Under the pieces are notes generated by a model. The model worked only from the letters and a program-made list of their open reading frames with translations. It was not told the DNA's origin and did not search any database. A DNA stretch of 64,000 nt from Rebecca billardiae RCC1528 (Eukaryota > Protista > Haptophyta). Positions within the stretch are counted from its first letter, which is position 1; each line of letters begins with the position of its first letter. The position numbers were made by a program, and so were the translations under genes. Shown here in pieces: positions 25,373 through 54,683 of this stretch. The stretch lies in the NCBI GenBank assembly GCA_965240325.2, contig OZ251238.1:434001-498000 (forward strand), given 5' to 3'.

Positions 25373-25380
<8 letters not shown>

Positions 25381-26237
25381 CCTTGACCTTGCGTACGCAA
25401 CCAACTGCCTGGATGCGGCAGGCGCATACTTACATAACACAGACACTCCTTGGGATTTTCTAGTTGTCGTGGAATACGTTGCAGCCCACCGCAGGCTGCA
25501 GTGGGGCACAACGGGCAGCGACCAAAAGCAGGCGGGAGCGCGAGATCGTCGTCGCGAGCACTTGGCACGAGGGCAGCTGCTGCGAAACCGAGCACGCAGC
25601 TGACAGCTGGCCAGAGGGCTTGGGAGAGGGAATCTGGCAGCTGGCTTGCCCGAGCAGCGTGCGCGTGTCACCGAGATCGAATCTGCGGTAACTTGGATGA
25701 GCCTCCTTGATGAGCGGACACGGCTGGCATACTGCAGCTTTGTCACCGTCCAATAAGCATAGAAGATGAATACGACCGCTGCCGGCCATTTGTACTCCAG
25801 GTACCCCCATCAATGTATGATCGACCGGCTGTAGATGAGAAAGCCAATCGATGAGCTGGAATATTGCTGGGCGACCGAGTTCGTCGTCATTGATGCATCA
25901 TAGAGGCGTGTATGATGCTTATTATGGCGGGAATGGTGAGCGCGCTTGTGGTGGTTGCTCCGCCAGAACGATGAATCGTTTGTATCTGCCGTGCTGTAGT
26001 CGAGCAGGTGTAGCGCGCTTCACCAGCGGTCGAGGCCGGCTCAGCTGGAGGCGCGGGGTGCCGAGGCAAGGGGCTGCAGCAAGCGGGCGACGGTGCGTCG
26101 AGGTCGATAATAGCCAATTGGATCGTGGCCCTGAAGCTTAGTACGACGCAGCGGGCAGGGCAAAGTCGATCGGCGGGTAGTATGGCCACGTACTTCTCGC
26201 CAGCGGACACAATCGATTATTGTGCCAATAACACCAC
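25373..26237 (+). mobile_element. Non-autonomous asymmetric-IR/3'-hairpin element (subfamily A, monomer)
   Basis: 5' GTGTCC (25377-25382); 3' GGACAC (26205-26210), AATCG, stem TTATTG-TGC-CAATAA, end ACCAC|AT. Same layout as the 44507-46123 units; AT-rich flanks; no credible ORF. Confidence 0.7.
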
Positions 26238-34861: not shown

Positions 34862-34981
34862 GCTACATCATCGGCGACGGCTCGGCGGTGACAGACAGGT
34901 CACAGAATCAGATGGCGGGCGTCAATCTCGCCTGCCTGAGCTGTGTGCGTCTCTTCTTATCTGAGTATTGAACTGTAAACT
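34862..34981 (-). repeat. Solo TA|CAGTTTAC repeat end (degenerate)
   Basis: TGGCGGGCGTCAATCTCGCCTGCCTGAGCTGTGTGCGTCTCTT is identical to the core of the 39460 copy. Confidence 0.8.
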
Positions 34982-34989
34982 CTACGGCC

Positions 34990-37900
34990 CTTGGTTCGTC
35001 TGTAACTACTGTTACTACCGTGAACTCGCGCTCCTCACTCTCAGGGAGGTGTGCGGCTCGCGTGTCGAGCACATCATGGATACGTACTCCAATTGGCTGT
35101 CTCGGCGGAAGCGCAGCAGCCGGACTGCCCGGCTCAACGCCATCCTCGACATGACTGTGGGTGCCACGATCGTGATGGCAGCGCCCAGGGCTGGCCCCAA
35201 CCTGCCGGGCCATGCCCACACGAGCATGCTGGAGGAGAGCATCCTGCATGATGGTGGGACCTCCGCCGCGCGGATGATACGCGCCACCAATGGGGGAGCC
35301 GCAGCAGCTGTCCTCTCCCTCTTCACAGCGGACGGCAGGAGGGCCCTCCGTGCATACGACCCCGCGCAGGAGTGGATGTGCGGTCGCCTGGCCCATGCCT
35401 TGCTGGATGGGCTCGTTGACAACTGGCTCACCGCCCCGGAAAACTTTCTGCTCACCGGGCACCTGGGCCCTGCGGACCGGGCTGCGGCCCACGAACGCGA
35501 AATCCCTACTGATGGCAGGCTGCCAGTGCGCGGCCTGCTGGCTGACACAGACAGGCTGATGGCCGGAGTGGATGGCTCCTACGTCCCAGGCAGGGGCCAG
35601 GGGGCAGCTGCTGTGGCATATGCGCTACCCCTCACACCGGGCGGCGAGCGCCATGCCATCACCATCTTCACAGCCACGTACCCCGGCGAGCAGTCAGCCC
35701 AGAACTCTGAGATTGCCGCTGCCACCCTGGGAGTGAAGGTGCTCTCTACTATTGGAGTGCGGCACGCCCACATAGGGTGGGACTGCGATACTGCCCTGCA
35801 CCACACCCTCCGCGCCCGACCGGACTTGACAGCCCCGGGAGAGTCTGTTCCCCGCCAGGGCACTGGCACCGCAGCCAAACTCCTCTCTGGCAGCCCCCAC
35901 ATGGTGCGCCTCCTCCGGCTCCTGGACATCTGTGTCCCACCGGCGTCGGGTCACCAGTGGGCGTTTCGCCACCAACAGGCAGGCCATGCGGAACTGGACC
36001 GCCTGGTTGGCAACACCCTGGCCCCACGGTGGTCGGCCCTCGACAACGCCTTCTGTGTGAGCTCGGCCCAATGTGAAGCGTTGCTGCGCATAGTGCTCGG
36101 ACATGCCCCTGGCACCCCACGCGACGCTGCGCTCCGTACGGTCTGCAACCTGTGTGCGGATTGGGCCAGCAAGCAGGTCGCCAGGGGTGACCGGCAGGCA
36201 TCGTTCGCACTGGGGCCGATGGTCTGGCTGCCGTACAGAGTGTCACTGATGGAGCACGGCTCTGCCACGTTGCTACCGTCCTGCCCAAACCAGGTCCGCA
36301 CCCGCGTCATGGACAGGGCGCGCAGGGCTGCGCTGGAGGCACATGCTGCCACGCCTGCTGCAGCAGCGAAGTACAGGCTCAAACTGGCTGGACCCGACAG
36401 TGACCAGGAACCCGACCACCAGGGCGGTGCCCCGCTCCCATGCGATGTCCGCGAGTCCACACACTCGCTTCAGAACCAGTGGTGCCGCGAGCGCATCAGT
36501 AAGTTTGTGCTGCGCTGCGCGGTCGGTGCACTGGTTTACAATGCGGATGCTGTGGCAGCCACACCGGCCCTGGCTGGTGTCCGGCGACGGTGCACCAGCT
36601 CGCAGGCGACCTATGCCCTGGGCACAGAGTGCCTATTCTGCCTGAAGGCGGGGGACCCGAACCCAGGGCCGGATAGCGTGCACCACGTCTTCCATCAGTG
36701 CCCGCACGCACACGCGCAGCGGAAAGCTGAGGACAGGGTGGGAGCTGCGATACGTAAGGCCTCGAATGGCGCCATCCCACAGCCCGAAGCCACCCGACTC
36801 GCGGTCCAGGCGACGCTTCACCCCTTCTACTATGCTGGCAAGGTGACCGGGGCCACTGTCACAGCTGTGAAGCAAGCACTGGCTGCCCACCAGCCGCCTG
36901 GCGGCCAGCCGGTGCAGTACGCCACTGGGATGATCCACAAGCCCTTGGCCCTGGCCGCCAGCAAAATCCACGACGAGCGCAGGGCGCTGAGCCTCAGCTC
37001 GGCGTATGCCAAGACGTACGACTTGGATAAGTACTGGGCCCTCCTCCATAAGCAAGGCCAGGCGGCTGCCAGCCAGGCGGAGCCCGCCCCTGCTGCTGAG
37101 GTGGCAGAGCCAGGCCCACCTGCTGAAGACTCGCCAGCCCCCAATGAGCTGCTGCAACAGCAGCCGGCCGCAGCTGCCCCACCGGCTACAGGTGCCCCCG
37201 CCAGCGATGCGCAGGCGCCCGCTGCGTTGGGGCCTGGCCTTGCTCCAGCAGCGGCGAGCCACCCCCTGCCTGCACAGCTGCTGGGCCCGGTGCCGGAGGG
37301 CGCCGCAGCTGAGCCGCCAGCAGCAGCGCACGCTGGCCTGGCTGGCGCGGCGATGCACGGCGCACAGCGTGGCAGCAGGCGGCGGCCCCGCTCGCCCGAT
37401 GCAGACGCCCTGGCACGCCAGGATGAAAACGGTGCGAGTGGGCCCCCTGCCCAGCAGCGGCGGTTGGCAGCAGCAGCAGGCTCCACCCCTCGCACTGCGG
37501 GCCCCCCAAGCTACGATGTGGCTGCCGGCCACTCTCAACACCCTGCACACCGGCGGCCAGCAGTGCTGCTGCCACCTATGCCTGCCTACGCTGCTGTCCA
37601 GCCGCAGTGGCGCGGGGCGGCCACTGAGCTGCTGGCAGCAGCGGGGCATGCTGTGTACCCTACGTGCATGCATGGGGACTGCCTCCTGCTGGCAGCCATG
37701 GGCTATGTCGAGGAGCGTGCCGCCGCAGTGGGCCCCTGCACCGCCGCCTACCAGGCAGTCCGCTTCCTCAGGGCAGCTGCTGTGGACTGGGTGCTCGGCA
37801 CGGCACGTCTCTCACGGACTCACCGGCTCCAACTGGGGCTCGTGGATGCGGATGGACTGGAGGCCATCAGCATGTCAGACAGCTATAGGGCCACGTACCA

Positions 37901-39250
37901 TGGGCAGGGCGCCCAGCCAACCCTGCAAGAGTTCGCCGCGCCGCTCAGGGCTGCCGCACGATACGGGGCCGATGGCAGGCTCGCCGCCGGTGGGGCGTCG
38001 AGGTACTGGCCCACGGTCATGATACCAGCGGTTGCTGCCGTCATGGGGCGTGACATCGCCGTGTTCCAGCCGCGCGCCAGCCAGGCTGCCCCTGCTGGTG
38101 GGACAGCAGGCAGGCCCGAGAGCTCTGATGCAGTCGGGCACCTGGTGGCGTGCACGCTGTATAGGCACGTGCCGCGGTGGTCCAGCATGAACAACCCAGT
38201 GTATACGGACCCCCAACGCTGGCAACACCCGCAGGGGGAGCCTGCAGGAGCTCCAGTGGGCCCGCGCCAGCAACAGTCGGTACGCGAACGCCTCCTTGCG
38301 CGTGACCCAACTCTTGCAGCAGTGTACTTTGATGGCACCGGGCACTACGAGCCTGTGCTGCCGCTGCCGAGCCGACCGGGGCTCAAGGACAGGGAGAGCT
38401 GCCCCACAAGCAACCGGCGCGGCAAACAGCCCAGGGACCGGCCAGACGACTGCCCTGAAGACCATGGCACAGGTGCTGGTGATGGGCAGCGGCGGTTGCC
38501 GGACAGCTCTGCGCTGCCTCCGCCCAGCACCGCGGCAGGCACCGGTAAGCGCCCTATGCACAGGGCCTGCACAGGCAGCCCCCAGTCACCGGTGGCACTC
38601 GCCCCCCCGCTTGGACACCCCCGGGGGTGTAGCCAAGGAGGTGCCAGCAGCAGCGCCGGCGCTCAAGCACCACCCGTCGCGCCGCGTGGCGACCCCCCTG
38701 CGGTGGGGCGTGGCCCGCCGGCCAAACGGAGCCGCCCGGATTCCGATACCCTGAAGCAGCCTCTCTGGCCTGGCGCCCCCTCTCCTGACCAGCCCAGACC
38801 CCCGACGCCTGCGGGGCCGGACGCCCCGCCCCTACGCAAGTCTGCCAGGCTGTGCCAGAGCCGCACGCGCGGCGCAGGCATGACTGCAGCTCCACACCAG
38901 CACAACGACGCTTCGCGCGCACCCGGCGCGCCGACACAGCCTGCCCGGGAGAAGCCAGCAGGGGCTGACCTTGGGCAGCAGCCATACATGCAGGCCAGCA
39001 TGAGCGGTGGGGTGGCATCAGTGCCGGCCCCGGCCCGCAAACGCAAACAGCCGGACGCCCCGGCCCACACAGCTGATGCGCCAGCAAACCCTGCTCCGGG
39101 CCACAGAACCCTGCCGCCGGCTTTGAGGCCGACTCGCCACACTGGGGCACATATCACCTGAGGGCCAGGCCTTCTGTGTGATGAGCTACCCCAGTCATGC
39201 CGCTTGATACACACCTTCCCCAACCGACAGTGGGGCTCTACATTCCCTAC
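34990..39250 (+). mobile_element. 5'-truncated non-LTR retrotransposon; open frame to 39161 with RNase H, CCHC finger and OTU-like domain; RT absent
   Basis: RNase H acidic residues in VDGS, NSEI, WDCD and CADW; CLFC-x10-HHVFHQC; OTU-like HGDCLL...DGTGHYEPV. Visibly less CG-rich than host genes and intronless; boundaries approximate. Confidence 0.75.
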
Positions 39251-43622: not shown

Positions 43623-44506
43623 CGTATACTCGGAGTGGCGGCAGTCGGTGCGGCTGTAGGCGGGCCGTGTAGCCGCATTATTTATCGTCATTGATAATAA
43701 ATGTAGATATATTTATTAATAGTTTCGAGTTAATACAATATATATTATATAAATGTTGAGCTGACGCAGCCTGGGGCGCGCATCTCAGCAGATGGCGTCG
43801 CCGCTGGGACGTCAGGGCCGGCGCCGCACCAGGCGGGCCGGCGGCATCAGCTACGGAGCAGTGGCTGGCTCTGGCGGCGCGCGCGCGCGGCGCGCGCGGC
43901 GGCAGGAGCGCGAGCGCAGCAGCGCTGGCGCGGAGCGACGTGGACGCGGAGCGCGGACGCGGCAGTGCGGACGCGGGGCGACACGGGCGCGGAGCGTGCG
44001 CGGGCGGTACTGCCCGGCGCAGCGCGGCACGGATGGCACGCCGGCGGCACAGGCGGGCGCCATCGTGGGAGAGTCCAAGGAACAACGGACTCGTTCACTT
44101 CATTCATGGACGCCCGGACTCTCAGTTTTGAGAATCGAGAGTCCGGGATCATGGGTCCGTGCGCAGGTTACCCAGGTCCGATGACATTACCGAGTACCTG
44201 GGGGAAAGATAAGCAGTTACGGCGGTGCGTCGGGAACACCTGTGATTGGTTGACGCACGGGGCGTGCGGCTCGGAATCATTGAGATTCCCCGAGCCGGGC
44301 CAGCAAACGCCGGGTCACCCCGCCGGAGCCGAAAAGAGCTCGGCGGGAGGTTAGCTTCGCTCGTCCGAAGAGCGAGAGTCGAGATTGCCTTCGTGGGCGT
44401 CACCGACGACGCGCCCGACTGGACGTGCCGGTGAGCTTTTAGCAGGGCTCGAGACGCTCGGAGCTCGCGTTTACCCAATAATAAATACGTATATTGATTA
44501 TAATAT

Positions 44507-46123
44507 GTGGCGTTATAGCGCAGCTATAACCGAGTGTGTCCGGAGGCTAGAAGGAGGCGATGCAGGCGTGCCGCTTGCCGACCAATTGGGCTTAATCCAT
44601 CATCTGCCGCGATTGCCGCGCCGATGCCGATGGCGATTGCGTGATCCTGCAGGTAGTGACTGCTGGTACCCAATGGTGCCGGCTGCTCACGTTTTCCGAG
44701 TGATTGCTGCTCCACCATCTCGACCGACCCTTCAACAGACAACACCAGGGAGTATGTTTGACAAGATCTTTACTATCATCGTGATGTGCTATTATTACAT
44801 TCTTCATCACCACTCATGGCAGCACCTCCTTTATGGCCTCCTGTCCAACTCTTCTATACGGCTCGCTCGTGTAGTCTATTTATTTGGCGGCTCTCGAGAT
44901 AGCATGTGCTGATGAGATTGATCTCTTGGGAGCTTCTCCATCAGCATCCAGGCAGCTTCTCATTCGTCAAGCAAGCGGCCAGCCCCAAGCTCATTATCGT
45001 TGTGGCCGCTTCTAGTAACTACGACCTGCTATCGAGCCGAGCCACTTGGGCATCCTCGGGCCCCCTGCTCATCCGCGCAGCAAAGCACAAAGAGGATCCA
45101 TCGCCTCCCGTCGTGCTTCTTTGCGCGAACATGCAATCGCTGTGGCACCGTCGGCTCAGTCGCTCTTCCTGTTCAGCCCGGAACAAATCCCAACCTCGAG
45201 TATACATCATCGGCATATCTATAGGCGATGCTACTTGGAGACAGCTTCGCTCTTCATGCAGGAGGACACGTGGCGTTATAGCGCAGCTATAACCGAGTGT
45301 GTCCGGAGGCTAGAAGGAGGCGATGCAGGCGTGCCGCTTGCGACCAAGGGCTTAATCCATCATCTGCCGCGATTGCGTGATCCTGCAGGTGGTGACTGCT
45401 GGTACCCAATGGTGCCGGCTGCTCACGTTTTCCGAGTGATTGCTGCTCCACCATCTCGACCGACCCTTCAACAGACAACACCAGGGAGTATGTTTGACAA
45501 GATCTTTACTATCATCGTGATGTGCTATTATTACATTCTTCATCACCACTCATGGCAGCACCTCCTTTATGGCCTCCTGTCCAACTCTTCTATACGGCTC
45601 GCTCGTGTAGTCTATTTATTTGGCGGCTCTCGAGATAGCATGTGCTGATGAGATTGATCTCTTGGGAGCTTCTCCATCAGCATCCAGGCAGCTTCTCATT
45701 CGTCAAGCAAGCGGCCAGCCCCAAGCTCATTATCGTTGTGGCCGCTTCTATAGTAACTACGACCTGCTATCGAGCCGAGCCACTTGGGCATCCTCGGGCC
45801 CCCTGCTCATCCGCGCAGCAAAGCACAAAGAGGATCCATCGCCTCCCGTCGTGCTTCTTTGCGCGAAACCCACCATCCGCCCCTGCAGCCTCCGTATCTC
45901 ACTCTCAGTTGTCTGAGCTTGTCAGGGACCTGCAGTCTGTGCTGCGCTCGCCTGAGCCAGGGACCTTGCCACCACATTCAATCGCTGTGGCACCGGCGGC
46001 TCAGTCGCTCTTCCCGTTCAGCCCGGAAGTGGCGGAACAAATCCCAACCTCGAGTATACATCATCGGCATATCTATAGGCGATGCTACTTGGAGACAGCT
46101 TCGCTCTTCATGCAGGAGGACAC
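44507..46123 (-). mobile_element. Head-to-tail dimer of an asymmetric-IR/3'-hairpin element (subfamily A); units 44507-45269 and 45270-46123
   Basis: Near-identical units joined GGACAC|GTGGCG with no spacer. Each has stem GTTATAGC-GCA-GCTATAAC 5 nt from one end, then GTGTCC, whose inverse GGACAC is the other terminus. Flanks are ATAT|...|ATAT. Confidence 0.8.
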
Positions 46124-47625
46124 ATATGTATATATATATATATATTATACTGCTGCGTAGCGCAGCATCCGTCATCACTCATCAGACCCGGTCATCCACG
46201 TCATCGTCGTCGTTCAGATTGCGACTACGACCATTGTAATAAACATATATGACCGCGTTCCGCGGTCCTTCCGTAGAACCAACGTAGTTAGGGGCCCGCG
46301 GTGCACTCTCCGTCGGCATATGCTGTCCGTCCAACGTGCGGCCGTAGCGGCAGCAGCAGCGCGGAGCGCCGTCGAGCACGCGCGGCAAACGAATAATGGA
46401 ATATTATGCAGCGCGGGCGAGTCGACGGTCTGGAAAATGCGCGATCACGCCACAGCAGGCTGGCAGAGCCCGCCCCGAGCTGCAGCATGCGCCGTAGGTG
46501 CTGCCCCAAGCTCTCGACTGCCCGTAAGCGGCGGCATGTGCGGCGGCGCCGGCGGCGGCCATGCTGCCCCGCCGTTGCGCGCCGCGGGGCGCTGCCAGCA
46601 CCTCCGTGGTGAAGCGCACAGCGCTCGAGCCCACAGGGGCTGGCGACCGTCAAACCGACACCCCATGACACGGGCCGGGGCTGCGTGTGCCAGCTGCACG
46701 CACCCCCTGGGCCCACCTGGCCCGCTCGAGCAGCTCGCGCCTTGGGTGCGCACAGCGGCTCGAGTATACTGGTATGGACTATGGGACGCCTGCTAGTGCT
46801 GCGGTGCCGCCGAGCGAGCACGTGCGGCCGAGGGTCACGCAGCACGGGCGACTCGACGGCGGCGAGCAGGCGCGACGGCCTCGCCGCGCCACGGTAGAGC
46901 CTGCCCGGGCTGCAGCACGCCATAGGAGTAGCCCAGCGCCCTCCTCCGCCCTCCAGCTTCGGCGCGCGCAGCAGGCCCGGCGGCGGACATGCTGGCGTGC
47001 CCAAGCAAGCAGGCAGATGGGCGCTGCCGGCCGCGCCGTCGCAAAGCGCGCAGAACTCGAGCTCGGGGGGGCGGACGGCCGCCAAACTGGCGCCGCAGGA
47101 CGTGGCACTGCGTGCGCCAGCTGCGCGCACCCGCTGCGCCCGCGTAGCCCGTGCGAGCGCCGCGCCTCGAGCACACGCCGCAGCAGCTCGACACAGCCAC
47201 TGCAGTGCCACGCCGTGGCCCGTCGGCATCTTGGAAGCCGCCGAGAGCGTGTGCTTTCCCCGCACGACGGCGGTAGCTGCCGCGATGTATACGAGCGTGC
47301 TGCCGCGCCGGCCGCCGCTGCCCGGCCGCTGCGCCGGCTTCCACTCCGCGCCCGCTGCGCGTCCGCAGCTGGCAGCTGCGCCCGCCGTCAGCCGGCCCGG
47401 TGGCCAGCTGCCGCGCTCGCTGGGCGACCACTCGATGATGCGCGCAGCGTAAAGTGCGCGCTGGGCACCTCCTCGTCGCGTGCAATTTCGAGGTAGTCCT
47501 GCATCTGCTCCTGCATCAGCCCCTCCCACCCTGCGCGCGGGCGCGGACGGAGTCGCACGCACGCGGTCCGATCGACGATCGATCGAGGCGCGGGCCGCGG
47601 CGGGACGGGCGTCGACGCGCAGGTT

Positions 47626-48084
47626 AGTTAGGTATGGTGCCGGCGCTTCCCGCAGGCGTTGCGCGCTTGGGGCGAGTGGGGCGCGTGGGCGAGACCAGCG
47701 GCCAGCCAGCCCACGCCACCGGCGCGAGGGCACCGGCGCGGCGCGCACACACACTTTGGGCCGCGGACCTGGTCGCGGAGTTAGGTATGGTGCCGGCGCT
47801 TCCCGCAGGCGTTGCGCGCTTGGGGCGAGTGGGGCGCGTGGGCGAGACCAGCGGCCAGCCAGCCCACGCCACCGGCGCGAGGGCACCGGCGCGGCGCGCA
47901 CACACACTTTGGGCCGCGGACCTGGTCGCGGAGTTAGGTATGGTGCCGGCGCTTCCCGCAGGCGTTGCGCGCTTGGGGCGAGTGGGGCGCGTGGGCGAGA
48001 CCAGCGGCCAGCCAGCCCACGCCACCGGCGCGAGGGCACCGGCGCGGCGCGCACACACACTTTGGGCCGCGGACCTGGTCGCGG
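47626..48084. repeat. Three tandem, apparently identical 153-bp units
   Basis: Units start at 47626, 47779 and 47932 with AGTTAGGTATGGTGCC. Confidence 0.95.
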
Positions 48085-48316
48085 GGCCGCCGCGCGGCTG
48101 CGTGACCGGCAGCTGTGAGTGAGCTGATCGAGTGAGCAAGCCGAATGCGCGTCCGGAGGTACCTGCAGGCGCGCTCGGGGAGGGCCGAGGGCGATAGGTC
48201 GAGACCAGCGGCCGGCCGGCACCCGTCGCGCACGCACTCGGTGCGCGCCTTTGAAGGCGGCATCCTCGCTCGGGCCGATGTCGTCGCGCCGCTCGCGAGC
48301 ACGAGACAGCTGACAG

Positions 48317-48589
48317 GCGGGTAACTTGGTTGTGACAAGCGCTATATTCAAAAGAATATCTTTCAATATTATCAAGGCGGTTCATCCATCGAGGCAAGCG
48401 GGTAACTGGCTTTAAATAGCGCTATTCAAAAGAATCTCTTCAATATGATGAGGAGGTTCATCCAACGAGACAGGTGGGTAACTTGGTTTAAAATCGCCAT
48501 TCAAAAGAATCTCTTTCAATACCATGAGGCGGTTCATCCATCGAGACATGCGGGTAACTTCTTTTCGCAAGCGCTATTCAAAAGAATCT
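48317..48589. repeat. About 3.5 diverged AT-rich tandem units of 76-81 bp
   Basis: GGGTAACT...ATTCAAAAGAAT...GGTTCATCCA units start at 48317, 48398, 48474 and 48550. Confidence 0.9.
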
Positions 48590-49114
48590 GGCCTCATAGC
48601 TGTTTTCGACCCAAAACAATCAAACGTCGCTCGGCAAACTCGTACTCCAGCATACAAGAAGGACAAAAATACTCACTTGTTTCACCCCCGGGGTATCTGA
48701 TCCCACGTCCGTCCATAGTAGATACAAGAATTGCAGCGGGCGCGGCCTTTTAAGCTGTGATGGACAGCATACCCCCCCTCAAAAAGTCGAAAACTCACCC
48801 TCCAACAGCCCTCAAAATCGTCCCCCATGCCCTTTTCTTTGATCAAAAGATCTTTTTGACAACGTAGTGAGGGCCCCCGGCGGGGGCTCCACGCTACGCG
48901 CTCCGCCCTGCACCGCGGGCCATGACGACGATGATGAGCGCGGTAGCTTTACGTATAGTATACGACACACCGCCACCAGCTGCTGACGATGATGCCTGAT
49001 GGCCGGCATGGCCGCCGCCGGCGCCGCCCTTGCGTCGTCATTGCGCGCGGGCTGCGCGCGTCCGGGCAGCACCGGGCGCGGCCGGCGCGCTGCTGTCGCG
49101 ACGACGCTCACCCT

Positions 49115-50938
49115 TCAGCCGGCGAAGGACAGGTGTGCGAAGCCGTCCTGGCCACGGGCAAGGTCACCTGCCGTGAGCTCGCCGTCTGGCCCACTCGGCG
49201 ACTTGGCGGGTGCCAATGATGACGACGACGCTTTGCCATCCGAGGACGACTCGAGACTGTGCTCGCCACCACCGTGATCGCCCCCGCGCCTGTGCCGCCC
49301 GCGCCTGCCCGCGCCCTCGGCATGCCGCCCTGCACGGTTGCGGTGCGTGCGCGTAGCCTCTGTGGGAGGGGCCTGCGCGCCGACCGGCCGCACACTGGCA
49401 TCGCTGCCGTTTGGGCTGGCGCCCAGCGCGGGCGAGCTGAAGAGGGCGTCGCTTGCGCCGGCCAGCTGAGACAGCCATGCGGGCGGCTGCGGGAGCGGGA
49501 GATGTGCCCCGCCCGGCTTGAGCACCTCCTTGCACGCCTCGCTCGACGCCCACTCGCGCCTGCCGAGGACGGCGAGTCGATGGAGCTGCTGCCACGCGCA
49601 CGAGACGAAGCGCGCCAGGGCCCGCACGTCCGCCGACGGCGCCCAGCCCTCGTGCAGCTGCACCGCGACGCCTTGCAGCGCGCGCTGTAGGGGGCACGCA
49701 GCGCCGCTCGCCGTGTTGTACCCGCTCGGCCTGTCCAGCGCCGAGCGGTACCGCACCACCTCCTCGTCCGGGGAGCCGCGCAGCACGAGCGGCGGCACCC
49801 CGCCCGCGAGCACGGCGGAGGTGGCGTTCCAAAGCGCTTCCTCGGACGAGTCCTGGAGACTGAGCAGCACGTCCACGATCAGGTCGGACGCGCCGCGGTG
49901 CGCGGGCTGCACGAAGGTGCCGCCGCGCGTCGAGACCTGCGCGATCGGCTCGAGGCCGGCGTGCCCGCTCGTGCCCGGCCGACGCACGCACAGGTCGGCC
50001 GAGAGGTTGGGCACCAGCAGGATGTCCGCGGGCGAGTCGACCTGGCCCACAAAGACGCCCGCGACGTGGAGCCGGCGCGGGCCCGACCAGAGCAGCTGCA
50101 GCTCGTGACGGACATCCGCGAGCGCGAACGGGAGGACCAGCTGGTCCGGCTGCCCGCACCGTCGCGCGCGCCGCGTGCGCGCGTCCTCGCCCGGAGGCGG
50201 GCCGGGCCGCTCCCCGTCGGGCGTCTCGGCCGCCCCCAGCTCGAGCCGGCGGCGCTGGGCAATGGGGATGCGCACGGGCACGCCGAACATGGCCGTACTG
50301 CGGAGCGCGCCCGCGACGTCGACGTCGATTGGATCGGCCATGCGGTTCGCCGCGATGTTGAACACCTCGCCCAGCGCGTCTGCGTCGACCACGTGCACGC
50401 GCACGTCCAGGCCGACCTCGTGCGCGCCGGGCCGAATGTCAAAAGCTGGGATGCTCACCCGCGCGGCCGGGCGCGCGAGTGCCCGCGTGGGCGAGCTCGG
50501 CAGCGCGACGCTCACCGTCGTCGGATCCACAGCCAGCGCGAACGCCGATGGCGACTCGAGCCTCACGCGCACGTCTATCCGCACCTGCTCCTCGCATAGG
50601 CTCGTGCTGTTGAGCTGCACCACACGCACGTGCAGGCACTCGGCCAGCTGCATGTACGACAGCGCAACGGCGAGCAGATACGCAAGCAACGCCGCGATGA
50701 GCGCGCAGCACGCGCATGCACCCATGAGGCGACATTTGCGATTGCCGCGGTCGCAGCGGAACGGTTCGGCCCGCAGCTCGTCCAGCATCTCAGCCAGCGA
50801 GCGCATGCCCGCTGCTGACGCGGCATGGCCGTGCGCGTCCTGCTGCGTGTCGGCCGGGCTCTGTTCTATCAGCACGGCGGCGTGCTTGGACGCAGCACTT
50901 TCGTGCTGCCTGACGGCGGCGATGCCAGCCCACGACAT
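49115..50938 (-). CDS. Membrane-anchored LEA_2/WHy-like beta-sandwich protein
   Basis: Single TM (CCALIAALLAYLLAVAL) followed by alternating beta pattern VRIDVRVRLESPS.FALAV...IPAFDIRPG; first in-frame ATG at 50938. Confidence 0.6.
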   Translation of the reverse strand: MSWAGIAAVRQHESAASKHAAVLIEQSPADTQQDAHGHAASAAGMRSLAEMLDELRAEPFRCDRGNRKCRLMGACACCALIAALLAYLLAVALSYMQLAECLHVRVVQLNSTSLCEEQVRIDVRVRLESPSAFALAVDPTTVSVALPSSPTRALARPAARVSIPAFDIRPGAHEVGLDVRVHVVDADALGEVFNIAANRMADPIDVDVAGALRSTAMFGVPVRIPIAQRRRLELGAAETPDGERPGPPPGEDARTRRARRCGQPDQLVLPFALADVRHELQLLWSGPRRLHVAGVFVGQVDSPADILLVPNLSADLCVRRPGTSGHAGLEPIAQVSTRGGTFVQPAHRGASDLIVDVLLSLQDSSEEALWNATSAVLAGGVPPLVLRGSPDEEVVRYRSALDRPSGYNTASGAACPLQRALQGVAVQLHEGWAPSADVRALARFVSCAWQQLHRLAVLGRREWASSEACKEVLKPGGAHLPLPQPPAWLSQLAGASDALFSSPALGASPNGSDASVRPVGAQAPPTEATRTHRNRAGRHAEGAGRRGRHRRGGDHGGGEHSLESSSDGKASSSSLAPAKSPSGPDGELTAGDLARGQDGFAHLSFAG

Positions 50939-51154
50939 TGACCACGGCGAGTACTCACTGGCGCGGTCCGTGGGCACGACGCGTCATGCCGATCCACCGC
51001 GTTTGCAGCCGGCGGCCGCTGGGCGGCGGAGCAGTGACGGACTCATCAGTCCGGAAAGCCAGCTCAGCCGCTCAGGTCCGGCGAGTCCGGCGCGTTGATC
51101 AGGCATCAACTCCGGGGACGTCGACTGTGCTTGCGAGTGGAGGCGGTGACGACG

Positions 51155-51514
51155 ATGAGGCTCCTCTCGCTGCTGCTCGCGGCCTTCGCGGCGTGCGCTT
51201 CGGCGGCGTCAGCGGACGTGGCATTCGTCGCACCGCGTGCGGTTGGTCTCGTCCAGCGCAGTCCCGCCTGCTCGACCGTGGCTGGTGTCGAGATGCGCGG
51301 CGCGGTGAAGAGCACAAAGCTCAAGGGCGCCAAGGTGAGGTCGGCGGTCGCAAAGCGCATGAAGGTGACTGCGGGCGGCAAGATCCTGCGCCGGAAGGCG
51401 AACAAGCAGCACCTGCTGTCGAGCAAGCCGCACAAGAACAAGAAGGCCGCGTCCAAGATTGGCAAGGTCTCCGACGCCATGCTCAAGAACTACCTGCAGA
51501 TCCTGCAGCCGTAA
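51155..51514 (+). CDS. rpl35: Plastid ribosomal protein bL35 with bipartite presequence
   Basis: Signal peptide + AFVAP, then KVRSAVAKRMKVTAGGKILRRKANKQHLLSSK (L35 signature). Confidence 0.92.
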   Translation: MRLLSLLLAAFAACASAASADVAFVAPRAVGLVQRSPACSTVAGVEMRGAVKSTKLKGAKVRSAVAKRMKVTAGGKILRRKANKQHLLSSKPHKNKKAASKIGKVSDAMLKNYLQILQP

Positions 51515-52329
51515 TTACGCCTGCGCCAGATGACTGCAAGGAGGTGAAGGCAGCGCGGGCTCGCGGGAATCCTCGTCCAGCCAGCGCACGCCTCTCGCAC
51601 GCGCGCGCAGGATCGCGATGAGACGCAACCGCATGCTCTCCGGCGCTCTGGTTCTGCACACGCAGGCTGTCTGCGCCAGCGCGGCTGAGACGGCAAGCTG
51701 GTGTGGGGGATCGGCAGCTCGGGTGCAGCGCGCTTGCGCTGGTGCTACGCGATGGCATGACTTGTCGGGGGGCTGGTTCCAGGTGGACGGGCAAGCGCTC
51801 GGACCGCGGGCACGTGTTGCCGGCTGCTCTGGTTCGGCTACCCCGACGACAGTGCCCGTGACCAGTGCCTTCCAACGAGCGCGATGTGCTCAGTGACCGC
51901 GGTGTAATACTGTAGTCACTGTACTAATGCGTTCGGTCCGACACTCTCCGACCGGTCGCGCGGGCGCTGGAACAGCGGCACCATCAGCGCCAGCATCGGC
52001 CATAGTCTATATATATATATTCAATGATGTGTCATGTTAGATCAGTGATGCTGTTCGGTAACTTTAATATTGAACATGATATTTATTAATTATTTTGATA
52101 CATCTGACGCTCGGTGACCTCCGGTCCGCAGCTCCGAGCTCGGCGGGCCACTCACTCTAGTAGTAGTATTACTAATTACTGATCACGGCTGGACTCATGT
52201 AAGTCAGCACTCATCTAATAATTCCATATGCCCGTGCTGATATTAGCCTAATTCAGAGGTCAGGCCGCAGGCGGGGACCAATGCGGACCCGCATATTCCG
52301 GATGAAGATTGAAGAATGAAGATCACGTA

Positions 52330-52580
52330 CAGTTGACTACTCAGTTGTCAGTTTACTAAGAATAAGAGACGCACACTGCACTCTGCAGCTCAGGCAGGCG
52401 AGATCAGTGACGCCCGCCAACCGTGTAATCACCGCCCATGAACTGAAGCCGTCGCCGATGGTAGCGCCGCCGGAAAAATTCGTTCAGCCGTCCGCCTGCG
52501 AGGCCTGGATGAGGGCTGCGGCCGCCTCGCGGCGCGCCAGCGCCCGTCGTCCTCGCCCCACCGTCGTCCGCAAAACGTCG
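52330..52580 (+). repeat. Solo TA|CAGTTTAC repeat end with small insertions
   Basis: Matches the reverse complement of 39309-39518 and stops about 20 bp before the element at 52601. Confidence 0.85.
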
Positions 52581-52600
52581 TATGAGTATTACTCTCATAT

Positions 52601-54683
52601 GACCGCGTTCCGCGGTCTTTTTCCGTAGAACGAACGTAGTTCGGGGCCCGCGGCGCACCCTCCGTCGGCTGCTGTCTCAGTCTGACATGTGTAACAGTTC
52701 GCCTGAGCTGCCACCGCCAACTCAGTCACTGCCGCCCACCGGGCCGGCGGGCCGAGGACTGTCGCCGCGGGTCCGCGGGCCGCCGCGGGGACTAGCGGCC
52801 GGCGCGCGCGCGCAGGCAGGGCGAGAGGCGCTGGCGCGGCGCGAGCCGGCGCGTGCGCGCGAGCGGGCGCACCTGCTTGAGGTACTCGCCCTGCGCCATG
52901 CGCTCGACGACGGGCCGCTGGTCGCTCGTGCCGGCAGAGCGAGAGCGCGCGCCACTGCTGGCCCCGGCCTGCCGGCTGCGCAGCCTCGCACCGAGACCGA
53001 CCGAGCGGAGCTCGGGGCGGTGGAACGAGGCGAGCGGCGCGTCGCGCCTGCCGCCGCGCGTGCGCGCCTGCTCCACCGCGCCGCCGTGCTCGCCCGCCGC
53101 CTCCTCCGCCGCGTCGGCCTCGAAGACGGCGGCTGCCAGCGGCAGGCTGAGCCGCGCGCCGGCTCACTCACACTGTGAGTCACACCCGCGGTCGCCTCGA
53201 CGGCCAACTATCCACAGCTGCTCGAGCTGCTGGAGGGCGCCGCGACGATGGCGGCGCGGGCGCCCAGCGCGTCCGTTGCCGCGTCGCTCAGCTCGTCGAG
53301 CTCGGCGCCGCACTTCGCCAGCTTGGCGCCTAGCGCCTCCGCGTGTCACGTGCTTAATCGTGCACGTCAGCCTGCTGATACGCCGCCGCCCATCGGCACT
53401 TCTGGCATCTGCGCGCGCAGCTGCTGCAGCTCGACGGCGGAGTCGTCGCGGCTGGCGGCGAGGGTGCGCACCGCGTCGATTGCCGAGGCCTGCAGCCCGG
53501 TGATCGCCGCGTCGACGCGCGCGGCGATTTCCCCACGCAGCCTCCTCGCGCCACGTGGCCGCCGCTCGCGTGGCAGGCAGCTGGGCGCCGCTGCGCGACC
53601 CGGAACCGGCGCGCGTTTCACGGATGCTCCTGCTCGTCCTCACGCTGCTGCACCTCCGCGCCGCCGTCGACCGAGTTGAGGAGGAGCTCGCGCTCGGCGT
53701 CGAGGCGCGAGCTCGCGTGCTCGAGCTCTGCGCGGGCAGAGCTGATGAGCCGGATGCGCCCGGCGGGCGCATCCGGCTCATCAGCTCTGCCGCGCTGCCC
53801 GCTCGCTCGCAGCGGCGCGCTCTGCTCCGGGCCGCCGTCGACTGAGTTGAGGAGGAGCTCGGGCTCGGCGTCGAGGCGCGAGCTCGCGTGCTCGAGCTCG
53901 CCCTTCAGCCGCGCGAGCTCCGGGCGCATCCGGCTCATCAGCTCTGCCGCGCCGCTCGCTCGGCGGCGGCGGGCGGCGCGCTCTGCTCCGGTCGGCGAGC
54001 GACGAGCTCGCGTGCTCCGGACTCGGCTCGCCCTTGCGCGCTGCTCCTCGAGTGACGAACGCGCCCGCGGGCAGGTTGTTGCCCGTCGCCCCCGCCGCGA
54101 TCTCGCCGCCCCCGCCGCGATCTCGTCGCGCATGTGTCCGTGGCGCGCGCCTGCGAGGTGACAGGCGGGCCGCGAGCTCAGCCTCGGGGAGAGCGGAGCG
54201 AGGAGAGGGCGAGACGCGCGGCCTGCGAGGCGACAGGCGCGCTCGGGGAGAGCATTTTACCATTCACATTTACAAGTGATCAAGTTTCCCGTGCGCCTGC
54301 GAGGCGACAGGCGCGCTCGGGGAGAGCATTTTACTATTCACATTTACAAGTGATCAAGTTTCCCGAGCCCTTGCCTTGCCGTTTTTATCGGTTGGCGGTT
54401 GGCGGCAATCTCATACTTAAAATCGCGCTCGTAACGAACCGTTACACTAATGTCACGTCCAGCTGACGTCCAGATCGCACTTTACTTAAGGGAATCAGCT
54501 GGACGCGCTTATTTTCGGCCTAATAGACCTCTCTATGCGATCTCAAAAACTCGAAACTCGGTCTCCGCCAGCCCTAAAAATCGCCCCCCGTCCCTTTTTT
54601 CTTGATCAAAGATCTTTTTGAAACGTGGTTCGGGCCCGCTGGTGCGGGCTCCACGCTGCGCGCTCCGCCCTGCACCGCGGGCC
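52601..54683 (-). mobile_element. Non-autonomous asymmetric-IR/terminal-hairpin element (subfamily B, copy 2) with scrambled coding-like cargo
   Basis: Same terminal stem (52601-52617); GGCCCGCGGCGCA (52645-52657) vs terminus 54671-54683 (12/13). About 65 bp and 135 bp of end homology to copy 1, interior unrelated; internal 74-bp-period duplication at 54221-54364. Confidence 0.8.

Follow-up and report, generated by a model that had tools for sequence, protein, structure and literature searches.

The seamless head-to-tail dimer in a 64,000-nucleotide stretch of Rebecca billardiae RCC1528 (contig OZ251238.1, positions 434,001 to 498,000; the whole stretch is hereafter the window) is in all likelihood a non-autonomous, internally deleted member of the tyrosine recombinase (YR) retrotransposons with split direct repeats (DIRS order), with the Ngaro/PAT-like layout A1-[ORFs]-B1A2B2. 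We demonstrated that its relatives share the same ends, that a reverse transcriptase (RT) and a recombinase lie in one frame between those ends, that the B/A joint is exact at 27 loci, and that A1 and A2, like B1 and B2, are identical within copies. Seamless head-to-tail copies with a terminal hairpin and no target duplication mimic rolling-circle transposition, the mechanism proposed when the window was read from sequence alone; here they appear as the signature of a split-direct-repeat YR retroelement. The order of transposons is a known one, of which a dimer is an ordinary structural feature, and the family described here is an added member from a poorly sampled lineage.

The window copy consists of the following features.

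44478-44506, no strand: left flank, AT-rich, ending ..TAATAT
44507-45269, + strand: unit 1, 763 bp, A1-M-B1, without the ~108-bp X segment
44507-44770, + strand: A1 of unit 1, containing a private 24-bp insertion
44512-44530, + strand: hairpin at the 5' end of A1, lying 5 nt inside the element and made of an 8-bp stem GTTATAGC/GCTATAAC and a triloop GCA of the GNA type
44536-44541, also 45299-45304, + strand: GTGTCC, complementary to the terminal hexamer of B, GGACAC (45264-45269 and 46118-46123)
44754-44770, also 45490-45506, + strand: remnant of the RT-YR ORF start (ATG TTT GAC AAG ATC..), with the ATG read directly in both window units
Between A1 and B1, + strand: M of unit 1, common only to other short units
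45130-45269, + strand: B1 of unit 1
45264-45281, + strand: B1/A2 junction GGACAC/GTGGCGTTATAG, centred on the palindrome CAC/GTG, with 27 exact loci genome-wide
45270-46123, + strand: unit 2, 854 bp, A2-M-X-B2
45270-45506, + strand: A2 of unit 2, followed by M and then by X at ~45868-45974
45275-45293, + strand: the same hairpin in A2
45960-46123, + strand: B2 of unit 2, 164 bp, shared with B1 of the long coding elements
46124-46150, no strand: right flank, (TA)n-rich

Both units are non-coding and join as ...GGAGGACAC/GTGGCGTT... with zero bases in between; the 18-mer spanning this joint occurs once in the window, versus 0 occurrences expected. The unit lengths and the seamless junction given by the sequence-only reading were confirmed. 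The units share blocks of 300, 117, 91, and 72 nt at 100% identity and differ by three indels and a few substitutions. Unit 1 carries the extra 24 bp (~44617-44640), which has an 8-bp direct repeat on its flanks, and unit 2 carries both the X segment and an extra 9 bp. Five substitutions separate the two A parts and three separate the two B parts. The M segments are identical (0/356 mismatches) and differ from M of a monomer elsewhere in the genome (L002) at one of 345 positions.

A search of the GC-rich genome (72 Mb, 41 contigs) showed that the unit is not unique: 72 stretches match it, about 20 of them being loci at which the identity is 75-95% across hundreds of bases. Starts of the A type number 97 genome-wide, versus 0 in the control. 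The junction GGACAC/GTGGCGTTATA recurs unchanged at 27 loci spread over more than 20 contigs, the control contains no exact copy of it, and monomers such as L002 also exist; the genome search that had been suggested for the junction and for other copies thus recovered both. All full copies examined start with GTGGCG and end with GGACAC. The proposed G...C ends, rather than TG...CA, held in every copy checked, free ends had the same boundaries in all copies examined, and, as had been claimed, no target DNA separates the units, the joint GGACAC/GTGGCG being exact at all 27 loci. The exact shared joint and constant ends also bear out the view that the dimer does not represent two independent insertions. 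We infer from the 27 equivalent junctions that the window dimer is probably assembled correctly. It is hardly credible that the dimer has nothing to do with transposition and is an assembly artefact, the seed of a satellite, or a simple tandem duplication made locally. The exact dimer is indeed present only once, but its joint coincides precisely with the element ends that independent copies define, and the identical joint recurs at the 27 loci in at least two sub-families.

Among the distinct contexts at fetched loci, ..ATAT precedes 12 of 13 free A-starts. The sequence after a free B-end is ACAC.. in eight contexts, ATAT in three, ACAT in two, and a different one in the last. Copies are thus flanked by (AT)n on the left and by (AC)n or (AT)n on the right, repeats that would mask a short target duplication. 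The right flank mostly opens with an (AC)n run, which internal joints never have.

The copies fall into several forms. The simplest reading of the monomers (A-M-B) is that the repeats of an element would have recombined with each other and left a solo AB. In family A, four or five copies have the A-M form only and stop at unit nt ~623, exactly where X begins, beside (TA)n. Sub-family C (L036-L042) has only the two termini in common with the dimer and shows the seamless joint in 7/7 fetched loci. Dimers of two short units occur in family C at at least six loci, and this recurrence, with spacings of 724-742 bp, indicates that short family-C dimers probably transpose as units. In family A, searches of the genome with the unit and with A-starts found no second dimer of two short units besides the window copy. 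Family B is represented in the window by an 861-bp monomer at 25377-26237, which has the same end architecture and a different, still complementary, hairpin stem. It is on the + strand as written, and its coding-sense orientation would be the - strand, on which it begins with GTGGTG and the hairpin GTTATTG.GCA.CAATAAT, ends with ..AAGGACAC, and is flanked by (AT)n(GT)n. A pattern search yielded 21 near-identical family-B-type termini among the matches listed, and a GTACAC/GTGGTG joint, from a relative of family B, is present at three loci.

The unit's ends also bound long coding elements. L020 has the hairpin end of family A together with nt 1-237 of the unit (98% identity to the A1 of L020, ORF start included) and continues into an ORF that starts inside A. 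The coding frame runs away from the hairpin end, which corresponds to the + strand of the window, and the unit and the coding element diverge right after the ORF-start remnant. Seven short family-A copies at other loci likewise match amino acids 1-39 of the RT ORF at 90-92%. The GC content at third codon positions (GC3) of the L020 ORF is 0.87, a coding-type value, with a range for the frame of 0.87-0.90. At L036-L038, what looks like the second unit proved to be the terminal part of a long element, in which a short tandem array is followed by GC-rich sequence that is 99.6% identical between loci and is overlapped by L020.

Pfam scans of the RT ORF and its sub-regions gave no RVT_1 or RNase H match, and scans of seven long homologues gave no RVT_1 match; a single weak integrase match appeared in all these Pfam scans. 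PDB sequence searches with the RT ORF, a five-sequence profile, and the YR also returned no match. The ESM Atlas placed the RT ORF and a homologue that is 34% identical to it (P0003) with RVT_1 clusters, one of which combines RT, RNase H, and Dam domains. An exhaustive profile search recovered 2,818 relatives of the RT module, many of them polyproteins of 1,000-4,400 aa; one sequence from this search (P0005, of P0005-P0153) is 94% identical to the RT ORF studied. Alignment of 52 relatives (alignment A2) revealed nearly invariant motifs A (FxDD..FNQ), B (LGFG..SNIAQRFS), and C (YTDD). The AlphaFold model of the RT made from that alignment had a pLDDT of 86.6 and a pTM of 0.83. All 50 of the 50 PDB matches listed by Foldseek for this model are RTs of MMLV, HERV-K, HIV-1, foamy virus, Ty3, or XMRV, with a best match at E 3.5e-9 and probability 1.00. 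On the basis of the Atlas placement, the profile search, the motifs, and the predicted fold, the ORF of the coding relatives is identified as a reverse transcriptase. RNase H-type signatures (DAA..GxGG..HG and H..G..N..D..SR) are conserved in the same alignment and visible in L036:3483-4259; the RNase H-like part that follows the RT is putative and assigned on motifs only.

A recombinase lies downstream in the same elements. In L006/L025 and L008/L023, the partial first copy is preceded by a 333-aa frame, which in L025 (1-999) matches PF00589 (Phage_integrase) at 29.1 bits, above the curated cut-off of 27.1, over the HxxR and catalytic-Tyr region. On C33, the RT (131065-132672) and recombinase (128722-129714) matches fall within a single 1,317-aa frame uninterrupted by stops, located between the A1 hairpin end (132798) and the B1/A2 joint (127967/8); this element was read without ~1.3 kb (129721-131062). 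RT and YR matches also share frames on C18 and C23, and the remaining RT/YR matches all fall inside same-strand pairs of A-starts that are 3.5-7.8 kb apart, the second start being at a joint. The order in the C33 frame is N-terminal region, reverse transcriptase, RNase H-like part, and tyrosine recombinase. In L025, L023, and L042, the YR is followed by a tandem array and then by B1/A2-B2. The B1 of L025/L006/L008 corresponds to the unit as well: nt 1487-1643 of L025 match nt 691-854 of unit 2. The coding layout is thus A1-[RT, RNase H-like, YR]-array-B1/A2-M-B2, in which M of the short downstream unit (~390-450 bp) is missing from the long element. Judged by sequence, the window copy is this skeleton minus the coding part, A1-M-B1/A2-M-X-B2.

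Two further features of the coding elements were observed. A 2A-like ..GEASNPGP, seen in L036:3483-4259 (- strand) and placed in the C33 frame by inference, follows the RNase H-like part and precedes the YR; the NPGP motif might mediate co-translational separation of the two enzymes. The family-C long elements (L036-L038: C7:62949-70753, C3:1980525-1988109, and C11) are 7.5-7.8 kb long with RT frames of 1,367-1,481 aa. Their recombinase part is missing near B1, where RT/RNase H continues into a ~36-bp tandem array. These copies are 99.6% identical in the parts read, 5' halves excluded, which suggests recent amplification of an apparently YR-less form.

The repeats are homogenised inside each copy, and the middles differ. 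A1 and A2 of L039 have the same private 9-to-10-nt replacement. B1 and B2 of L042 differ at 2 sites, versus 10-11 sites when compared with other loci. Likewise, A1 equals A2 on C33 (0/236) and B1 equals B2 on C38 (0/143). If whole dimers were copied, the repeats would be closest to the same-position repeats in other copies, and the observed pattern differs. The matches between A1 and A2 and between B1 and B2 within copies suggest that the ends are regenerated, LTR-like, from an internal template. In DIRS-1, there is experimental support that an internal junction region is needed for restoring the ends (PMC7192593). By the published DIRS/Ngaro model, a transcript without the outermost ends would be reverse-transcribed, the ends would be restored and joined with the internal B1/A2 joint as template, and the recombinase would insert the product at T/A inside (TA)n tracts, leaving no recognisable target duplication. 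The head-to-tail joint would then be a built-in feature of replication.

Parts of the data depart from a simple split-repeat model. The split-repeat layout is present, with an M segment between A2 and B2; the downstream short unit is thus A2-M-B2 rather than a bare A2B2. The family-A copies with A-M only are not predicted by the model either. M is identical in both window units, and a recently doubled monomer, for example in the form of a dimeric cDNA or a circle, is a possible alternative source of this copy. A variant that keeps the same retroelement family would have the dimer arise on the spot or in a single step from a monomer. Possible routes include template switching to give a dimeric cDNA, a second circle integrating precisely where a resident copy ends, and unequal exchange. 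This variant agrees with the near identity of M to the L002 monomer and with the window copy being the only family-A dimer of two short units found, but the three indels and the substitutions in A and B show that the copy is not a fresh duplicate, and dimers of two short units recur in family C. We regard the one-step origin as improbable.

The sequence-only reading had instead attributed the dimer to rolling-circle transposition. In favour of a non-autonomous Helitron2/Helentron-type element whose replication read through its terminal hairpin, the unit inserts at T/A and forms seamless tandems, and Helitrons are on record both in tandem and as circles with joined ends (PMC5148889). The resemblance to non-autonomous Helitron2/Helentron elements (PMC3627910, PMC5148889) extends to the terminal hairpins, some of which have GNA-type loops, to the lack of visible target duplication, and to occasional head-to-tail arrays. 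It also includes the short complementarity between end and sub-terminal sequence, which recalls asymmetric terminal inverted repeats. In Helitron2, these repeats are 8-15 bp long, the 5' repeat lying within 0-2 bp of the terminus and the 3' repeat just before the 3' hairpin (PMC3627910). The geometry is similar here, but the complementarity spans 6 bp (5/6 in family C), under the published range. The start base and target differ as well: the dimer starts with G and targets T/A, whereas Helitron2/Helentron elements prefer a 5' T and insert after TTTT or within TT (PMC3627910, PMC5148889). Moreover, the long-plus-short heterodimers, with A and B identical within a copy and unlike middles, argue against read-through of one template.

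Helitron_like_N ORFs of 2,600-3,640 aa do exist in this genome. There are five matches to PF14214 (C7:282420, C13:616682, C23:65118, C33:783174, and C39:342498), in frames of 2,606-3,640 aa, and we fetched 20 kb around each of these loci (L031-L035, L043-L052) for comparison. Four of the five loci form a single family, with identities of up to 99.9% across 8.3 kb. Dimer-type ends had no match in the termini or flanks at the five loci (20 kb each), and none of these loci lies near any of the 97 A-starts. A Helitron partner for the dimer was rejected on these grounds: the ends of the Rep/Hel elements are unrelated to the unit, and no Rep/helicase was found between ends of the dimer type. The coding elements with dimer-type ends are retroelements instead, with RT and YR in one frame, and the rolling-circle mechanism is very improbable for this family. 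Read-through of a termination hairpin is not supported either. Since transcription sense runs inward from the hairpin, as judged by the gene, the hairpin marks the 5' end of the element rather than a 3' terminator, and the Helitron2-like orientation is reversed; the junction is instead the B1/A2 joint of split direct repeats.

Other candidates were set aside during this comparison. A non-LTR element or SINE with a 3' stem-loop aimed at (TA)n was considered because the hairpin end is constant and the other end variable, and was dropped because the coding relative encodes RT and YR from the hairpin end and the internal joint has no tail. Penelope-like elements, which form pseudo-LTR tandems, were rejected because the recombinase here is a YR.

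Among the split-direct-repeat YR retroelements, the family is close to Ngaro (DIRS order; zebrafish, Cafeteria burkhardae). Ngaro elements encode a YR, have the layout A1-[ORFs]-B1A2B2, and occur together with isolated AB repeats, for example in Cafeteria burkhardae (PMC8547959). Split direct repeats downstream of the YR and no methyltransferase have likewise been described (PMC4157794). The elements here share this layout, with internal repeats downstream of the recombinase, and the domain order RT, RNase H-like, YR. In both, isolated AB units are scattered and GC-rich elements occupy AT-rich sites. The differences from Ngaro are an RT lineage too divergent for Pfam RVT_1, a single 1,317-aa frame in which the 2A-like NPGP motif follows the RNase H-like part and precedes the YR, the extra M in the downstream short unit, strict (TA)n targeting, and the conserved GNA-triloop hairpin 5 nt from the start. 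PAT-like/kangaroo/TOC elements (DIRS order; PMC4157794, PMC3266345) share the A1-B1-A2-B2 layout, the LTR-related RT/RNase H, and the YR. A methyltransferase domain is present in DIRS1 and PAT and absent in Ngaro and VIPER. PF05869 (Dam-type methyltransferase) had no match in the genome, a result to be read with Pfam's blindness to the RT and with C33:129721-131062 unread. With ~1.3 kb of the best copy thus outside the comparison, the lack of a detectable Dam-type methyltransferase leans towards Ngaro over PAT, a placement made from layout and domain content.

The hairpin stems differ between families yet stay complementary, both in family B (window 26212-26226) and in family C (GTTATAAC.GGA.GTTATAAC). 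The GNA triloop is on the coding strand. The GTGTCC motif is kept in families A and B, and 5/6 of its positions are kept in family C. In the minimum free energy structure of 45240-45320, GTGTCC pairs with GGACAC on both strands, at energy z-scores of only -1.4 to -1.8. When B is joined to A, this pairing with A nt 30-35 would lengthen the 8-bp hairpin into a rod, the 5' arm of which holds the CAC/GTG joint. Folding energies of the junction showed no significant gain over shuffles (z -0.1 to -1.8); the structure is instead suggested by its conserved geometry and by compensatory stems in three families. We tentatively propose, as a possibility somewhat short of even odds, that the junction rod (CAC/GTG within the GGACAC/GTGTCC pairing plus the covarying 8-bp GNA-triloop hairpin) is the recombinase substrate and that the 0.7-1.6-kb A-B/A-B miniatures are the minimal cis-acting unit of a Pfam-invisible haptophyte lineage of Ngaro-like elements. 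If true, the miniatures would offer a compact natural test system for end restoration and (TA)n target choice in split-repeat retroelements.

The exact ends, the conserved junction structure, and the small non-autonomous dimers are usable for testing the largely theoretical integration model of Ngaro/PAT elements. Because the RT of this lineage escapes Pfam, anyone annotating a GC-rich algal genome could mistake such miniatures for Helitrons.

Other features of the window were also recorded. Immediately past the (TA)n run to the right of the dimer, a further sequence opens at 46151-46170 with another small hairpin, GCTGCG.TAG.CGCAGC, and the element list of the sequence-only reading includes 46251-54683. 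A 1,397-aa open frame at 34968-39161 (+ strand) has no Pfam match at E <= 0.01. The non-LTR RT that the sequence-only reading placed at 35560-38370 may be in a different frame from this ORF. Long spurious frames are common at such GC content. At 47626-48000, a perfect 153-bp tandem repeat (2.5 copies, 100% identity) reaches the edge of the scanned region.
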